DNA of 64,000 bases from positions 233,875 through 297,874 of the forward strand of contig JALMLS010000453.1 in the NCBI GenBank assembly GCA_038496445.1, in the 5' to 3' direction. The position numbers were made by a program, and so were the translations under genes. Below the pieces are notes generated by a model. It did not search any database and was not told where the DNA came from. It saw nothing but the letters and a program-made list of their open reading frames with translations. The DNA is from Trichosphaerium sp. ATCC 40318 (taxonomy: Eukaryota > Protista > Tubulinea). Shown one piece after another: positions 35,502 to 42,007 of the stretch (its first letter is position 1; each line of letters starts with the position of its first letter).

Positions 35502-36968
35502 ATGGAAATATCTCACCTCTGTTTTCTGCTTGCCTTATGCATTTCAATCTCCACAGCCGCTATCCCTGAAACGTTTGACAGCTATGTAGTAGATTACGTA
35601 GAGAATCGGTTTACAGTCAATCAAACCAGTGGTATTCGTTTTTTAAACAGGGTGGATCCAACTCAAGTGCTTACTGGTACGTTTTAAAGCCGAAAACCTC
35701 CTCAGGAGCAAAACTATTTTATTCAAAAGTGAAAAGGGTCTAAACGTTTTACTAGAGTGTGCAGATGTCACCACAACGCGGTTTTATGATGTGGTGGGTG
35801 TCGCTGTACTACCAGATGACCGTATTGTGCTTTCTCGTGGTCCAACTATTGCCGGAGGGCTGGCTAGTGAATCAACGCTTGTATACGATAGAAACTGTAC
35901 ACAGGTACGCGGAGAGTTCGGTTTTCGGCAAAACGAGATTTTTTGTAGTATAGACCTTTTCTACGCGTATTACTCCACAATGCGCACGTCACTGCATTGG
36001 TAGCACCAAAAAACCCCGAAAACCCCAACAACTTAACCGTGCATAAACGCATGAAAAACGTTAGGACGCCGTTTTATAACACAACAGCCATTTTACAAGT
36101 GTTTACTCCCTCCTCATATGTTATTTAGTTAAAAGAGTGCAACATTAGCGCATACTCTTCATTGAGTGTTGATCCAACAACTGGGAAGTTGTTCATGTGG
36201 GGTGAAATTAAAGAAAGGTCATCTGTGGTCATAGGACTCGCAGAACTTGATGTAGATACTTGTAATGTAACAAAGAGATGTCCTGATATTGTCACAGGCA
36301 CTCCTGATACGCAACACGGTAAGTTAATATTGGTACAGTACAGAAAATGGACCTAATGTTGGGTTTTATAAAGTTGCTGTTATTGGTGATTTTCTGTATC
36401 GTATTGGTACCTCTGGTATGATCATGGAAGCTTCGATTCCTCAAGATAATCTCACTGCGAATTGTGAAACAACAAGAACTGAGTCATCCCCAAGTTTTTG
36501 TACAAACCCAAATGGTACGACTTCTTGCCGTTTATTATCTTGTTTGAATACAAACTTATCACTTTTCTAGGTTTGACAACACTGGATGTTGAAACTCTAC
36601 TTATTGTATGTGATAATTCATCAGTAGTGCTATTCAACATCACATCGTTCACATTCTCAGACATTGTCGAAAACAATGTTACTGTTGGTCTTTTTGACAT
36701 GGCCTTGTTTCCAAACCCAAGTATTGTACCTCCTCCACCAACCACTGTACCTCCTACTACCGTTGCTCCTACAACTGCTCCAACAACGACAGCACCAACT
36801 GCTGCTTCAAACACAACTGTTGCTCCAACAACGACAGCACCAACTGCTACTTCAAACACAACTGTTGCTCCAACTACAGCATCTCCAACCACATCGCCAC
36901 CAAGTAGCACTTCACGTGTTGTATTTGGAAGTTTACTTGTGCTATCAATGGTGATGCTTTCACTTTGA
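35502..36968 (+). CDS. Secreted, probably GPI-anchored surface protein (beta-rich/propeller-like domain plus Thr/Pro mucin stalk), paralogue A
   Basis: Signal MEISHLCFLLALCISISTA, exons with AVLPDDRIVLS and LSVDPTTGKLFMWG, stalk with a 45-nt tandem repeat (PTTTAPTA.SNTTVA x2), C-terminal SSTSRVVFGSLLVLSMVMLSL*. Confidence 0.8.
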
Positions 36969-37081
36969 GATACTAAAAACCAAAATCTAATAAACAAGTT
37001 TCGAGAATAGTTATGTACCGTTGGTTTTTGGGAAAGTTGATTGGACTGGAATTGCTTTTATTTACAAGTTGTATTACAAAA

Positions 37082-40000
37082 TTATGGTTTGTACTCCTTT
37101 AGTACTTGTATAACACGTTCAATTTCCCTCTTTGTTGTTGATTTACTTAAGGAGAATCGAATAGAGCTCTGAGCTTCCTTTGTCGTCCTACGGAAAGAAT
37201 GTCAGAACGCAATTTTGTGATTAAACATTCACGATTGTCTCTTTTGACGTTACCTTCCAATAGCAATAAGAACGTGGCTTGGTGTATTCTTTACACTAGA
37301 ACAAGCTGAACCTGCGGAGCAAAATATTTGATGTCGAGAAAGGTACTGGATAAGTCTCTCAGACTCCCATTTTGGGAAAACGATCTTAAGAAAAAAATAA
37401 GAATGGAATGTTACAAGTAAAAAAAACGCTAGACGGAGCTCTCTGAAGGGTACTACGTACATTCAAGTTATTGCATAGACGCTTATCATTACCAGATTTA
37501 ACAGATAATCCATTTATCTTGGCATTAGGTACAACCTCTTTAATACCATGGAACAACGAATCTCTCAAATCGGATACTTTTGAAACAAAAGAATCTCTGT
37601 CTATTTTTGCTGCTTCGCTGAACCCTACTATACCAGGAATATTTACAGTTCCAGACCTAATATTAAACTCTTGACCACCACCTGAAAACCAACAATAAGA
37701 TAAAAAATTGTACTTTAGTCTTACCATGAGCCATTGTTGATATTTTTGTCTTGTCTTTAACATACAAAGCACCAACACCTTTAGGTCCATGGATTTTATG
37801 TGCGTTTAGAGTCATGAGGTCAATATGTTGTTTAACGACGTCTATTTTTACTTTTGTAAAGCTCTGGCATGCGTCTGTATGAAACAATACGCCATGATCG
37901 TTACAAATCTTTCCAAGAGCTTCAAGGTCTTGAACAGTGCCGATTTCATTGTTTCCATGTACTAAAAGGAAAAAAAAAGTAAGCACAAAAATATGTGTTT
38001 CACGCATCACGTGTTTTTGAAAAATAGTCACGTGCCTACTGAAAATAAAATAGTTGATTCTTTTATACTTTCTTTAAGACGTTCAGGTGTCACAAGACCA
38101 GTTGAGGTGACAGGCAAAATAGTAGTCTCAACACTACAAAACAATTGAGCTAGTTTGAAAATACTAAACGAACATTGTATTACCCTTGCTTTTTTAGTGC
38201 GCCAACTGCCTTTAATACAGAGTCGTGTTCGATAGAAGTCGTAATGACATGCATAGGTTTACCTGTGTAAACGAAAGGATGAGGAACAAGCATGACGAAG
38301 TAATAATCTAACCTGGATTATTTTTCCTGTAAGCTGCTACTACACCACTGATAGCCAAGTTATTACTTTCTGTACCACCCGAGGTGAATATAATAGATGA
38401 AGATTTTGCATTAATAGCATTAGCAATAGTATCACGTGCTATGCCTGAACAGGAAAAGGACAGTAAGCAAAAAAAATTTAACGAAACAAACAAGATTAAT
38501 AATTTACCAACGGCATCCTTGGTCACTGCACCAAAAGCGTGAGGGGAATGCATGTTTCCGAAATCACTTGTAAAATAAGGTATCATTTTCTTGAGTATAT
38601 CTGCGTCAACAGGAGTAGTAGCTGCATTATCAAGGTAAACAACAGCGGAAGGTATCTGAGGAAGCGAAACCTATTGAACAAGTTAAAACTTCAGAACGGA
38701 TTTTTTTCGTTGCAAACAACCCTTACCTGCTCGTTTTGTGTTTCTCCAATACAAGTACGTTGTCTTTTGGCAGGACGTTCTATTTCTGATTCATCGTCAT
38801 TTCCATTAATTAAATTATTTACAATCTCTTCATCTTCATCAACGCCATCAATCTCCATGGGCTTAACCTTGAAACAGAAATTAAATTTGCGCGCCAAAGT
38901 CTATCCCTTCACATACCTCACTCTCTTTTTGTTCTTCTTCTTGAACGCCTTCGGGAATCCATGGACATACCTGTATGGTGTAAGAATTATATCAAGAAAG
39001 AGGTTGATAGAACTCACTGTGTTGTCAACAACTTGAATTTTTGGGCTGACCATTTCCCTCATCATTTGTACTTTTACTTCACCACCAACAGTAGTTATAG
39101 AAGTAATTTGAGCGCATTTTACTGCACGCGTCACAAGGCCATTTACATTTAAGTTATCCATGTATTTCTGTAGAGGCATCTAAACAAAATACACTTAACA
39201 CAAAAAAATAATAGTTTTAGAACAAAAACACACCTCTTCGCCTCTGAGATGAAGCGCTGGATGTTTACCCATAAAATAGGAACAACAATCACCATAAGGA
39301 AGTGTTGATAGGTCATAAGTTCCTATTTTTTCAGCAACTGATATAATCTCTTGCTTATTAAGACCTAAACGGAAAGAGTAAACTTTTTGTCCGAGGAAAA
39401 AAAACCAAGAAAAATAGTTTTGTTGAAGTGTTTGCTATTTGTACCTATGCAAGGAGCTAATATTGGTAGCTCTGATGATTTATATATAGCCTCAAGGTTT
39501 TTCAAAGTCTGGGATGCGACTTGACTGAAAGAATCTCCTGTACAGAGAAATGGTGCCTTGTGTTTGTATCCAATTCTTGAACCAATCTATTTTTACAAAA
39601 GTTAGTACTTTTTCTTATCCTGTATATGATGCTTTGTACCTTTGTCATAAAACGCCTGTATACAAGCATACGCTCATTTGCTGGTACTTTTTCTATAATT
39701 GCTGCTTGCACTTCAGCAAACGGCACAATATAAAGAAAAGTCCGGGTCTGAAAATGAGCAAGTTGTTCAGCAATTCTTTGAATCTTATCTTTAACTGCTT
39801 CTTCCATCTGTTACGTTTTTTATGTTAAATGTAGTCAAAAATCAGAAACACTTACTTGATTTTGGTTCTGATAATGTACTAGAATTACTCTCATACCACG
39901 CTTCATCATCAAATACGATGAAACAGGTGAATCCATTCCGCTACCAAAGATTTTAAAAAACTGAGATCATTTCATCTGTTGTGGGTACGTACCCGGACAA

Positions 40001-41721
40001 TAATGCCACGCATTTTTGCCCATCTTGTATAGGAAGTCCTCCAGGTCCACTAAGAATTTTGTCATAGATATCTAAACGAGGTTATGAGTTTGTTTCACGT
40101 AAAAATAAAAAAATATTTTGACTTATGCATACAAACATTATCTGCTGTTACGCGAATTTCTAGGCGTAAGTGACCTTCTCCCATATTTTTAACCTTTCTT
40201 ACTTCTCTATTAGGCCATTTTTTCTTAACAGCAGCTATCAATGGCGTCTTAAAGCTAGCTGTACTTTCTGTGAGCTGATGATATGGATCTTTGAAAACAA
40301 AATGGACTATAGACCACTCCTAAGCAAATGATTTAATCTACTATCCATAAAACGATTGCTATAAAGCTAGGTGGGTATAATTAGACGTATTTCGTACGTC
40401 TTCTTTCGTTTCTAGACGCTTTATAACTTGGTCAATGACAAGTTCTGTATCAAGATCAAATCGAGTTGCTTTCGCTACACGACTGACTCCAGGCACGCGA
40501 GAACATATAAGAGCTATTTTATCTGCATCGCTCCTTTTCTTTGGTACTACAAACATGTGATGGCCATTCTCGTTATTACCATCTAAAGAGGTTAACTCTT
40601 TCTTCGTTTACTTTTTTTTTTGAATGAAAAAAAGTTCATACTTGAGATTAGTGTTTTCGCCTTTGAACGGACATGTTGCATGAGTAATTGAGTCATAGCC
40701 GCTCTATTACCACCCTTTAAGTACTTTTTTAATGTTAAGGATAATTTTATATTAGAAGGAACAATAAAAAAAGCAAAAGGGTGCAAACTGTGCTGAACAT
40801 AAAAGAAAAAAAAGATACGAGCTCAGAAAACATAACAAGTATGATCACTTGGCCATCTGTAAACTTCTGATATGGACGTAAATGCTTAGGTTTGATCTCA
40901 TGGGTGGATATATAAGCTCTTTCCAATCCTATTTTTTTAATGTCAATGAACGAAAGGTACTACAAAAACAAACAAACATTTTCGAAAAAAAACAACAAGG
41001 TAACGTAAAAAACTGAAGGCAAAAAAAACGTTAAAACGTGCCTATTTCGACGTGGATCTTTAAGGTTTCTTTTGTTACTTTCTTTACAGCAGGTTTACCA
41101 TAAGCTGTCTGTATTTCCCCTTAAATAAACAGTTTGAGAATGAAAAAGACGTAAAGTCACTTTAAAATAATTAATTAAAGGTATAGTAATGATAAACGGA
41201 GGATTTATAACCGTACTACGTAAGAACTGGGGTTTCCGAAACGAATTACGTAAAAACTGTTACGAACAAAATTGCGTACTGTTGACAGTTGCGAAATATT
41301 CCTTTGCGACGCCTCCAAATTGTTTTCTAGGGCCTCTGAAGTCCAAATCCATCAATAAACGATAGTTTGAAAAGTTCTCGATTTCTTCACGAATAAACGT
41401 AATTATACTCCTTGATAATTCATTGGGTTCTATTGGTGCAGTGTTTACGATTGAGTAATTATCGATTACGCGCATTTTAGCGATTGTTTTCGCAAATCTC
41501 TCCATATCGTCTTGCGGTACAGTAGCAAGGATAAACTTGCCGTCAGTTCGGTGTTTGATACCCGCATTTGTAAGCTTTCGCCAAAACTTATTGGTACATT
41601 TGTCGTTGCTTCCTACAAACACCCTATCCTTGAACGATTTGTTTTGGCGCATAAGAATTACATTCTGTTCATGTATAGTTGATACAGAATCTCCACACAC
41701 GCTACTACCGCTATCCGCCAT
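37082..41721 (-). CDS. thiI-iscS: Fusion protein: degenerate NFLD-THUMP + ThiI tRNA 4-thiouridine synthetase + acidic/NLS linker + group I cysteine desulfurase (IscS/NifZ-like); ~22 exons, ~1050-1100 aa
   Basis: ThiI motifs after splicing: IILVMFSEL|YLKGGNR, SRVPGVS, LRLEIR, GPGGLP..GQKCVALLSG|GMDSPVSSYLMMKRG (PP-loop SGGxDS), LVYRRFM, TGDSFSQVASQTLKNL, PILAPCI|GLNKQEIISVAEKIGTYDLSTLPYGDCC. Desulfurase motifs: YLDNAATTP, FTSGGTESNN, TTSIEHDSV, HGNNEIGT, FHTDACQS, NAHKIHGPKGVG (PLP Lys), GGQE..RSGT, SAGSACSS (catalytic Cys), PSHVL, SIRFS. The linker exons join in phase 0 through canonical GT-AG introns with no stop. Confidence 0.9.
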
Positions 41722-42007
41722 GGTATAGTTACGTACAATAATATTAGGATATTAAGAAATGATAATAATCAAGTACAGCGAAAATTAGCAGAAAAAAAGC
41801 CGTTGTACTTTTTTACACACAAATACAAAATGCTCGTTATGACTTTCAAATTCTTGATCCTTTGAAAACACAGTTTGAATCAGCAGAATAAAACGTAAGA
41901 AATTCTGTAATTAGACCACCCAACTCGAATTGATAGCAACATAATTTCTTTTAATTATTTACAAGCAATGTACAAAGGGAGAAAAAAAATACGGTAATGA
42001 GACTTCT

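Follow-up and report, generated by a model that had tools for sequence, protein, structure and literature searches.

A spliced protist gene fusing a rhodanese-less ThiI to a NifS-like cysteine desulfurase: a candidate self-sufficient thiolase in Trichosphaerium

The stretch of DNA analysed here (the window; 64,000 nucleotides of contig JALMLS010000453.1 from Trichosphaerium sp. ATCC 40318) carries on its minus strand a gene of 22 exons, whose structure was set by contigs of spliced RNA drawn from four public runs. Its transcribed region covers 37041..41753 and yields an mRNA of ~3.3 kb after splicing: at the 5′ end (~41753) an X4 contig reaches 41753 and continues for 8 loose letters, which we take to be the tail of a template-switch oligo, and at the 3′ end (~37041) the X1 and X4 contigs stop at 37041-37044. 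The coding sequence (37082..41721; ATG at 41721, stop at 37082-37084) is composed of exons 1-8 (41721-41280, 41119-41042, 40928-40819, 40723-40642, 40582-40398, 40319-40133, 40071-39993, 39940-39856), exons 9-15 (39807-39640, 39586-39445, 39364-39234, 39179-39018, 38970-38917, 38867-38727, 38670-38508) and exons 16-22 (38444-38313, 38262-38184, 38133-38036, 37961-37725, 37681-37461, 37384-37254, 37187-37082), making a single open frame of 3213 nt free of stops and coding for 1070 amino acids (aa). Fifteen exon joints were listed from RNA, the others being placed by lengths of contig pieces and the GT/GC-AG rule; a 16-exon model obtained with a naive dynamic programme based on splice sites and codons proved wrong and was replaced by the RNA-guided one. 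An earlier note on this DNA had proposed a fusion of ThiI with a desulfurase in one frame, and the RNA-supported model reproduces its 22 exons, its end coordinates and all motifs quoted there; in place of the quoted peptide SAVYLD it reads SAVVYLDNAATTP. The phase-0 junctions EE/MPLQ, DNT/VCPW, ESE/VKPM and NEQ/VSLPQ, proposed in the same note, correspond to the RNA joints 39179>39234, 38968>39016, 38865>38915 and 38668>38725. The introns, 21 in total, are short and host-style; their supposed GT-AG type holds for 19, but two are GC-AG with donors at 41041 and 38035, both TAG/GCACGT.

A contig of run X1, 1650 nt long, begins in the 3′ UTR (37041), passes through all desulfurase exons and the linker up to 39179 and reaches ThiI exon 11, of which it includes 85 nt. 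In X4, one contig links exons 10, 11 and 12, and others cover the way from the 5′ end to exon 10. Since the 1650-nt contig crosses the linker into a ThiI exon, both parts are transcribed as one mRNA, and one gene with one mRNA is thereby confirmed for the fusion, as had been anticipated. Coding differences between strains, counted in related samples, amount to 14 synonymous versus 2 non-synonymous, and the gene is shown to be under purifying selection.

Database searches were run by remote tools using as queries either single exons or the relative from Pygsuia biforma as a stand-in for the spliced protein. The central part of the protein comprises ThiI’s own NFLD and THUMP domains (aa 197-365; 40061..40860, minus strand), delimited by HMM alignment and an audit of conserved columns, and the PP-loop (AANH) catalytic domain (aa 366-591; 39096..40060, minus strand), recognised by PF02568 and a HMM of stand-alone ThiI. 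ThiI motifs follow each other in frame: SELYLKGGNR (aa 208-217), GPGGLP (370-375), SGGMDS (387-392; 39997-39928, interrupted by an intron), MMKRG (399-403), TGDSFSQVASQTL (488-500) and IGTY..PYGDCC (533-547), with D545-C546-C547 encoded at 39290-39282. Against the HMM built from 114 stand-alone ThiI proteins this part scores 409.8 bits, and the profile check suggested earlier gave matches to PF02568 on exons 9 and 11 taken singly (E 6e-9 and 1.5e-9). From aa 372 on, only 2 of ~64 conserved ThiI columns differ, and C546 and C547 align with the invariant DCC columns (equivalent of E. coli C344). The NFLD and THUMP domains are present and collinear (HMM positions 6-165 on aa 202-365), with no Pfam THUMP or ThiI_fer match on single exons, and in the THUMP region the protein departs from the profile at five positions that at least 93% of the 114 proteins keep (F>S302, R>F308, K>P311, S>T319, G>I327) and that vary among the four relatives examined. 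As expected beforehand, the exon Pfam search places the linker and Aminotran_5 after the PP-loop domain with no rhodanese domain there, the relatives showing the same, and there is no CXXC in aa 197-591, where cysteines occupy positions 264, 382, 487, 518, 546, 547 and 585. The ThiI domain of the Pygsuia relative exceeds the NCBIfam ThiI equivalog-domain cut-off (299.6 versus 264.5), and the best match among solved structures is the rhodanese-less ThiI of Bacillus anthracis (2c5s). Judged by its sequence, the ThiI part is complete, rhodanese-less and intact in its catalytic residues.

The first ~190 aa form an extra module ahead of ThiI proper. This putative degenerate NFLD-THUMP-like module (aa 11-190, exons 1-3; 40879..41691, minus strand) is collinear, at 20.7 bits and a conditional E of 1e-8, with positions 9-165 of the same HMM of stand-alone ThiI, and its Pygsuia counterpart matches NFLD-THUMP in hhalign with a probability of 79% and E 1.7e-5. 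Exon 1 alone gave a weak hhalign match to the ThiI N-terminal profile (12.6%), exons 1, 3, 5, 6 and 12 searched singly had no Pfam match, and the low-confidence AF2 model of exon 1 (alignment of 6 rows, pLDDT 50) has the order beta-alpha-beta-beta-alpha-beta. Behind the PP-loop domain lie the C-terminal tail of ThiI and an acidic linker of ~100 aa in all (aa 592-689; 38650..39095, minus strand), defined by composition and by junctions in RNA; with 23 D/E versus 9 K/R in 98 aa it is probably disordered, and the NLS-like stretch RPAKRQR at 38777-38757 might conceivably act as a nuclear localisation signal.

The remainder is a short NifS-type class I cysteine desulfurase (aa 690-1069; 37088..38649, minus strand), assigned by PF00266 (Aminotran_5; E 2e-22 and 1e-13 on single exons) and by the HMM of 58 stand-alone NifS-type proteins (496.7 bits). 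It keeps the PLP lysine K895 (37797-37795), the catalytic C1020 in the SAGSACSS loop (37303-37301), H793, D869, Q872 and R1046, and, of the columns shared by at least 93% of these 58 proteins, all 33, so that with the conserved columns of the PP-loop domain the catalytic integrity proposed for both halves is borne out. The domain ends at HMM position 373, and alignment to this NifS-length model reveals no C-terminal tail (~20 aa) of IscS/Nfs1 type, again in agreement with the first reading. In NCBIfam the exons and the relatives score with the NifS model (TIGR03402) at least as high as with IscS models, all under equivalog cut-offs, and its one verified IscS (P0113, 658 bits) falls into a separate starred clade of the desulfurase tree, which holds no Nfs1 sequence; PDB ranking of the Pygsuia desulfurase domain gave scores that do not separate NifS, IscS and NFS1. 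Thus classed by sequence comparison, the desulfurase is supported as NifS-like rather than IscS-like.

The uniqueness implied by the earlier note was not upheld, the same ThiI-NifS order being found in Pygsuia biforma (EP00033_P000651, 1028 aa), Nonionella stella (EP01083_P075211, 1030 aa) and five environmental proteins (P0097, P0151, P0152 and P0397 among them), one of which lies on a contig looking eukaryotic. Pygsuia aligns collinearly with the window protein over aa 60-1069 (37% identity), Nonionella over aa 140-1069 (36% identity), and Pygsuia likewise has an N-terminal extension matching NFLD-THUMP. Overall these fusions are only 33-41% identical to the window protein, their linkers and N-terminal parts vary in length (1028 to 1668 aa in total), and no introns break the ORFs of the environmental members on their contigs, in contrast to the Trichosphaerium gene with its 21 introns. 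Separate phylogenies of the two halves, recommended beforehand, are compatible with each other: the ThiI halves of six same-order fusions, window protein included, form one clade (98% SH-aLRT), and for the NifS half the same clade is favoured and not rejected (held tree +79 lnL, p-AU 0.94), both trees being unrooted and built on a biased sample. Sequence thus shows the window protein to be one of a few protist ThiI-NifS fusions that make up a monophyletic group, a rare enzyme family known from sequence rather than a one-off. Each half finds its closest matches among prokaryotic proteins (DPANN-type ThiI ~43-47%, NifS 52%), the nearest stand-alone relatives of the ThiI half in the tree being archaeal (DPANN) sequences; a thiI-nifS adjacency that might have been a source of the fusion was not found beside the nearest stand-alone prokaryotic relatives P0293, P0300 and P0002. 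Within the limits of their biased sample and lack of a root, these trees agree with an old gene of prokaryotic derivation.

Reviews restrict s4U to bacteria and archaea: no eukaryote has been reported to contain it, and the ThiI homologues present in some eukaryotic genomes are not linked to a known product (PMC5372739, PMC7694415). In our literature search, neither a fusion of ThiI with a desulfurase nor eukaryotic s4U turned up in any paper. The closest parallel is offered by Bacillus subtilis, where NifZ plus a rhodanese-less ThiI is enough to form s4U8 (PMC5372745). As in the window protein, ThiI of B. subtilis and B. anthracis is devoid of rhodanese and CXXC and has the PYxDCC motif, and it is served by its own short desulfurase of NifS type; in Bacillus, however, these are two adjacent genes, nifZ then thiI, whereas here one polypeptide of predicted function has ThiI followed by the desulfurase. 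The ~100-aa acidic linker, the extra NFLD-THUMP-like module and the 22-exon eukaryotic gene are further differences from the Bacillus pair. E. coli ThiI, served by IscS, shares with the window protein the NFLD-THUMP-PP-loop core, the C344-equivalent cysteine and the position of a sulfur-donating domain C-terminal to the PP-loop domain, but this domain is a rhodanese persulfide carrier (C456) in E. coli and a whole PLP desulfurase here, so that an IscS-type partner is predicted to be unneeded and a thiamine role is not expected. The [Fe-S]-dependent ThiI/TtuI of methanogens (M. maripaludis) is rhodanese-less too, yet it has a cluster-ligating CXXC pair (plus a third cysteine), absent here, and takes sulfide as the sulfur source, in contrast to the cysteine desulfurase attached here.

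The best explanation, which we hold to be fairly probable, is a nuclear, intron-rich, expressed gene producing, as one 1070-aa polypeptide, a degenerate NFLD-THUMP module, a rhodanese-less ThiI and its dedicated NifS desulfurase. By analogy with the Bacillus pair, its function is most likely that of a self-sufficient cysteine-to-s4U tRNA thiolase, against which speaks the lack of any report of s4U from a eukaryote. The PLP domain would draw sulfur from free cysteine and form a persulfide on C1020; the long acidic linker would give the mobile Cys loop access to the PP-loop domain either in cis or across a NifS-type homodimer; one of the PYGDCC cysteines, C546 or C547, would receive the persulfide; and ThiI would adenylate the target uridine with ATP and swap its 4-oxygen for sulfur. 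We infer this relay, the substrate, the s4U product and a cytosolic or nuclear location of the enzyme. In characterised ThiI enzymes the target uridine is U8 of tRNA; here the substrate or the position may differ, because basic THUMP positions are lost (R>F308, K>P311) and an additional N-terminal module is present.

Taken further, this divergence leads to the assumption that the same fused enzyme has another target altogether, the diverged THUMP and the extra module redirecting thiolation to another position (e.g. U9) or another class of RNA (organellar tRNA, rRNA, snRNA or regulatory RNA). We consider it rather unlikely: the five substituted THUMP-region positions, the second NFLD-THUMP-like module shared with Pygsuia and the precedent of s4U9 in an archaeon (PMC5372739) speak in its favour, but the entire NFLD-THUMP-PP-loop layout is collinear with that of stand-alone tRNA ThiI at the bit score given above. 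An organellar target is further disfavoured by the N-terminus, the first 40 residues of which (2 basic, 5 acidic) have no obvious organelle-targeting character by this purely heuristic measure. Moreover, we know of no ThiI with a non-tRNA substrate. It is also conceivable, but improbable, that a desulfurase of its own is made from the locus, as an additional or even the main product, by an internal start inside exon 12, which opens with an ATG codon (M564), or shortly before it, with a linker-plus-NifS product serving general sulfur trafficking and the fusion mRNA being minor. X1 RNA depth indeed falls stepwise towards the 5′ end (34.6 over 37041-39318, then 10.8 and 4.4) and the X1 contig ends within exon 11; such a fall is nevertheless expected of 3′-biased libraries, and the profile fits 3′ bias while being compatible with an additional shorter transcript too. 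Against a separate product stand the in-frame passage of the contig across the exon 11/12 junction, the X4 linkage of exons 10, 11 and 12, the fused order retained in seven relatives and the RNA contig data, in which no pile-up of read starts is reported.

A role in cofactor sulfur metabolism (thiamine thiazole, Fe-S or Moco) instead of RNA thiolation appears very improbable. E. coli ThiI serves thiamine synthesis through its rhodanese domain, a part missing here, and a pure sulfur carrier would have no use for retained RNA-binding NFLD/THUMP domains with a full PP-loop adenylation site. The automatic database names of the relatives (ThiI/thiamine, ‘thiamine biosynthesis-like protein’) and the participation of E. 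coli ThiI in thiazole synthesis point towards thiamine, but the rhodanese-less ThiI of B. subtilis is dispensable for it (PMC5372745). As to prokaryotic contamination or an assembly chimera of two genes, the closeness of both halves to prokaryotic proteins might suggest it, but its probability is negligible: all 21 spliceosomal introns are spliced out in RNA contigs of four runs, the GC content of the gene matches that of the surrounding window, and the same junctions recur in independent samples with synonymous differences. Contamination and two-gene readings are ruled out by this RNA evidence, contamination also by the host-style short introns together with expression.

For the preferred reading, a fused and dedicated thiolase, we advance tentatively, as a possibility falling somewhat short of likely, that several unrelated protist lineages (an amoebozoan-like organism, breviates and foraminifera) owe to this family true s4U or a related 4-thiolation on nuclear-encoded RNA, with cysteine sulfur obtained without mitochondrial Nfs1 and with a tandem NFLD-THUMP imposing a substrate rule unlike that of bacterial ThiI. 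If true, this would overturn the textbook absence of s4U from eukaryotes. Because it is predicted to carry its own sulfur source, the fusion protein should work in isolation, and the question of eukaryotic s4U therefore becomes directly testable; as a naturally occurring single-chain counterpart of NifZ and ThiI, it could also settle how rhodanese-less ThiI enzymes receive sulfur.

Class I desulfurases and the ThiI PP-loop domain are joined in one chain elsewhere as well. A kinetoplastid representative (‘thiamine biosynthesis-like protein’ of Leptomonas seymouri, KPI89524.1, 794 aa) matches ThiI in the PP-loop part only (HMM 165-372), and the reverse NifS-ThiI order occurs in Rhodelphis, diplonemids (Diplonema), euglenids (Entosiphon) and bacteria. 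Since these proteins fall into clades separate from the window protein in both trees and have a PP-loop-only ThiI or the opposite domain order, they are independent fusions, which makes a clean case of recurrent joining of a desulfurase to a PP-loop thiolase. The bacterial example of reverse order, P0159, has hisF/hisH and infC-rpmI-type genes as its neighbours.

The gene model was built by aligning contigs from public sequencing runs (X1 to X4) to window 36900-41900 and letting their joints, together with the splice rule, define the exons; 15 of the 22 skips in the alignment are listed individually, the others being deduced from contig-piece lengths. The resulting minus-strand coding sequence runs from the ATG at 41721 to the stop codon at 37082-37084 and comprises 22 exons (3213 nt) in a single open frame of 1070 aa, while the GC content of the region (0.35-0.38) is like that of the remainder of the window. 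Nineteen introns are GT-AG (43-160 nt) and two are GC-AG, both of the latter being backed by RNA contigs (that at 41040-41041 via contig-piece lengths). These two share the identical minus-strand exon/donor context TAG|GCACGT, at 41040-41041 and 38034-38035. One X4 contig reaches 41753 and is followed by eight unmatched letters, presumably a template-switch oligo tail, which makes 41753 the probable 5′ end of the transcript; no ATG precedes the start codon within the transcript, and its 3′ end falls near 37041. In one X3 contig (window 38039-38213) the 50-nt intron 38134-38183 is left unspliced and differs from the window by three bases and an extra A, so that either the intron was retained or the library contained DNA.

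Record 1 of X1 (1650 nt, depth 34.6) extends from 37041 across all desulfurase exons and three linker exons, crosses the junction 39179|39234 and covers 85 nt of exon 11, the exon encoding the ThiI motif PYGDCC. Exons 12, 11, and 10 are joined in one X4 contig (depth 5.5), exons 4 to 10 in X4 record 14, the 5′ end to exon 3 in X4 record 15, and exons 3 and 4 by a further contig. Since these overlapping contigs span ThiI and desulfurase exons, the fused frame gives rise to a single spliced message, and does so in samples that bear the labels of three organisms or strains; the single transcript proposed in the earlier note is thereby borne out, and its fusion gene, right in nearly every detail, is real and expressed. 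Depth in X1 drops toward the 5′ end (34.6, 10.8, 4.4), which leaves room for an additional shorter isoform from the same locus, although the same drop fits 3′-biased libraries. Over window 36900-37066 X4 depth is 41 versus about 8 over the 3′ exons of the fusion gene, so a more highly expressed neighbor ends close by; the minus-strand frame at 36800-36960 is a repetitive V/G/A-rich ORF. Between the window and the X2, X3, and X4 contigs 16 coding sites differ, 14 synonymously and two not (H862R and I664M), and the gene is under purifying selection.

Single exons already matched ThiI (PF02568) and Aminotran_5 (PF00266) in Pfam, and the profile check suggested earlier was extended with HMMs of 114 ThiI and 58 NifS-type proteins, all stand-alone, placing a whole ThiI (NFLD, THUMP, PP-loop) at aa 197-591 (409.8 bits) and the desulfurase at aa 690-1069 (496.7 bits). 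A further match at aa 11-190 covers ThiI model positions 9-165 only, i.e., NFLD and THUMP (20.7 bits, conditional E 1e-8), and has a counterpart in the Pygsuia relative (hhalign probability 79%, E 1.7e-5, 147 columns), which together support an extra degenerate NFLD-THUMP module ahead of ThiI. Exon 1 alone matches the ThiI N-terminal profile weakly by hhalign, and its AF2 model, of low confidence, runs beta-alpha-beta-beta-alpha-beta as ferredoxin-like domains do. The linker (aa 592-689) counts 23 acidic versus 9 basic residues and contains RPAKRQR.

Of the 84 ThiI columns that at least 93% of the stand-alone proteins share, the window protein retains 70. The NFLD/THUMP region holds 12 of the 14 altered columns (including F>S302, R>F308, K>P311, S>T319, and G>I327); the sole changes from aa 372 on are A>S395 and A>G478, with SGGMDS, K523, and D545-C546-C547 preserved. 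In the desulfurase, none of the 33 conserved columns is altered, H793, D869, Q872, K895, C1020, and R1046 being among them. The protein contains no rhodanese domain and, as the earlier reading noted for the RRFM helix and a cysteine check confirmed, no CXXC; its desulfurase stops where short NifS proteins do, in agreement with the claimed lack of an Nfs1/IscS C-terminal extension. By a heuristic reading only, the charge of residues 1-40 (5 acidic, 2 basic) likewise speaks against a mitochondrial presequence.

When 1.84 billion representatives were searched exhaustively with exon 19 (78 aa), most hits were NifS-type proteins 370-400 aa long, alongside three long two-domain proteins; a word-indexed search with one of these, Pygsuia biforma EP00033_P000651, gave many proteins with both PF02568 and PF00266, which local domain mapping arranged in three groups. 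Group 1, a full ThiI followed by NifS, includes the window protein, Pygsuia (Breviatea), Nonionella stella (Foraminifera), and the environmental-assembly proteins P0097, P0151/P0266, P0152, and P0397; the contig of P0152 looks eukaryotic because it bears ankyrin and proteasome RPN1 fragments. P0152 (L001 10001-14944) and P0151 each form one unbroken ORF of about 1650 aa, in which the N-terminal region of ThiI contains long inserts and the linker measures about 240 aa, whereas the window gene has 21 introns. Group 2, the ThiI PP-loop only and then NifS, is represented by Leptomonas seymouri KPI89524.1 ("thiamine biosynthesis-like protein") and four environmental proteins. Group 3 has the reverse order (Rhodelphis marinus, Diplonema ambulator, Entosiphon sulcatum, and many environmental proteins), at least one member lying in a clearly bacterial gene neighborhood, and an ESM Atlas cluster with 76 bacterial members carries the same domain pair. 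The uniqueness implied earlier is thus not upheld: the window protein is one of about eight members that a rare protist family has among several billion database proteins; they were already in public data, though unannotated, and analogous fusions arose several times.

In a quick IQ-TREE analysis of 83 ThiI rows, which included six group 1 proteins (P0397 was found later), these form one clade (98% SH-aLRT) nested in stand-alone ThiI of Woesearchaeota, Nanoarchaeota, Diapherotrites, and some Verrucomicrobia-labelled MAGs, with the reverse-order fusions across the midpoint. In the NifS tree the group 1 desulfurase domains fall among NifS-type proteins in a part that is unresolved, and constraining five of them to stay together gave a better likelihood (+79 lnL, p-AU 0.94) than the unconstrained quick search; groups 2 and 3 each form a starred clade of their own. 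P0113, the sole verified IscS in that tree, sits in another starred clade. Both trees are unrooted, drawn from stand-alone sets picked by similarity and free of Nfs1 and Bacillus-type ThiI. In NCBIfam, NifS outscores IscS both for the relatives and in two of three window exons; PDB scores give no separation of NFS1 from NifS. Because of the two trees and the NCBIfam scores, group 1 probably had a single origin from NifS-like and archaeal-type rhodanese-less ThiI genes, independent of the other fusions; thiI and nifS are not adjacent in the nearest prokaryotic relatives inspected.

NifZ and rhodanese-less ThiI suffice for s4U8 in B. subtilis, the acceptor cysteine of this route being still undefined (PMC5372745). 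By analogy, the window enzyme is most likely a NifZ-ThiI pair acting in one chain. Among ThiI contexts, a 2014 survey lists DUF814 and TusA fusions and no desulfurase fusion (PMC4075521), and no publication on a ThiI-desulfurase fusion was found in the literature searched, largely outside subscription journals. According to two reviews, s4U has not been reported in eukaryotes, although some of their genomes contain ThiI homologues (PMC5372739; PMC7694415). The point of interest is the product, namely whether s4U is formed in these eukaryotes and which RNA would carry it.

Fusion of a class V desulfurase to its PP-loop or related thiolase appears to be a recurrent theme. The ESM Atlas also holds Aminotran_5 with ATP_bind_3 in arthropod-labelled eukaryotic clusters (1026-1339 aa), with MnmA (tRNA_Me_trans) in Myxococcota and with PAPS_reduct in methanogens. 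In P0040, a hypothetical Eimeria flavescens protein of 939 aa (KAL8439606.1), residues 460-849 form a NifS-type domain (43% identity to that of the window) behind some 450 residues without an assigned domain, and there is no ThiI domain. A large set of proteins annotated as Acidobacteriota/Vicinamibacterales (P0165-P0229, about 880-900 aa) joins a fructose-bisphosphate aldolase-type domain (PF01116, PF08013) to full THUMP-ThiI and makes its own clade in the ThiI tree.
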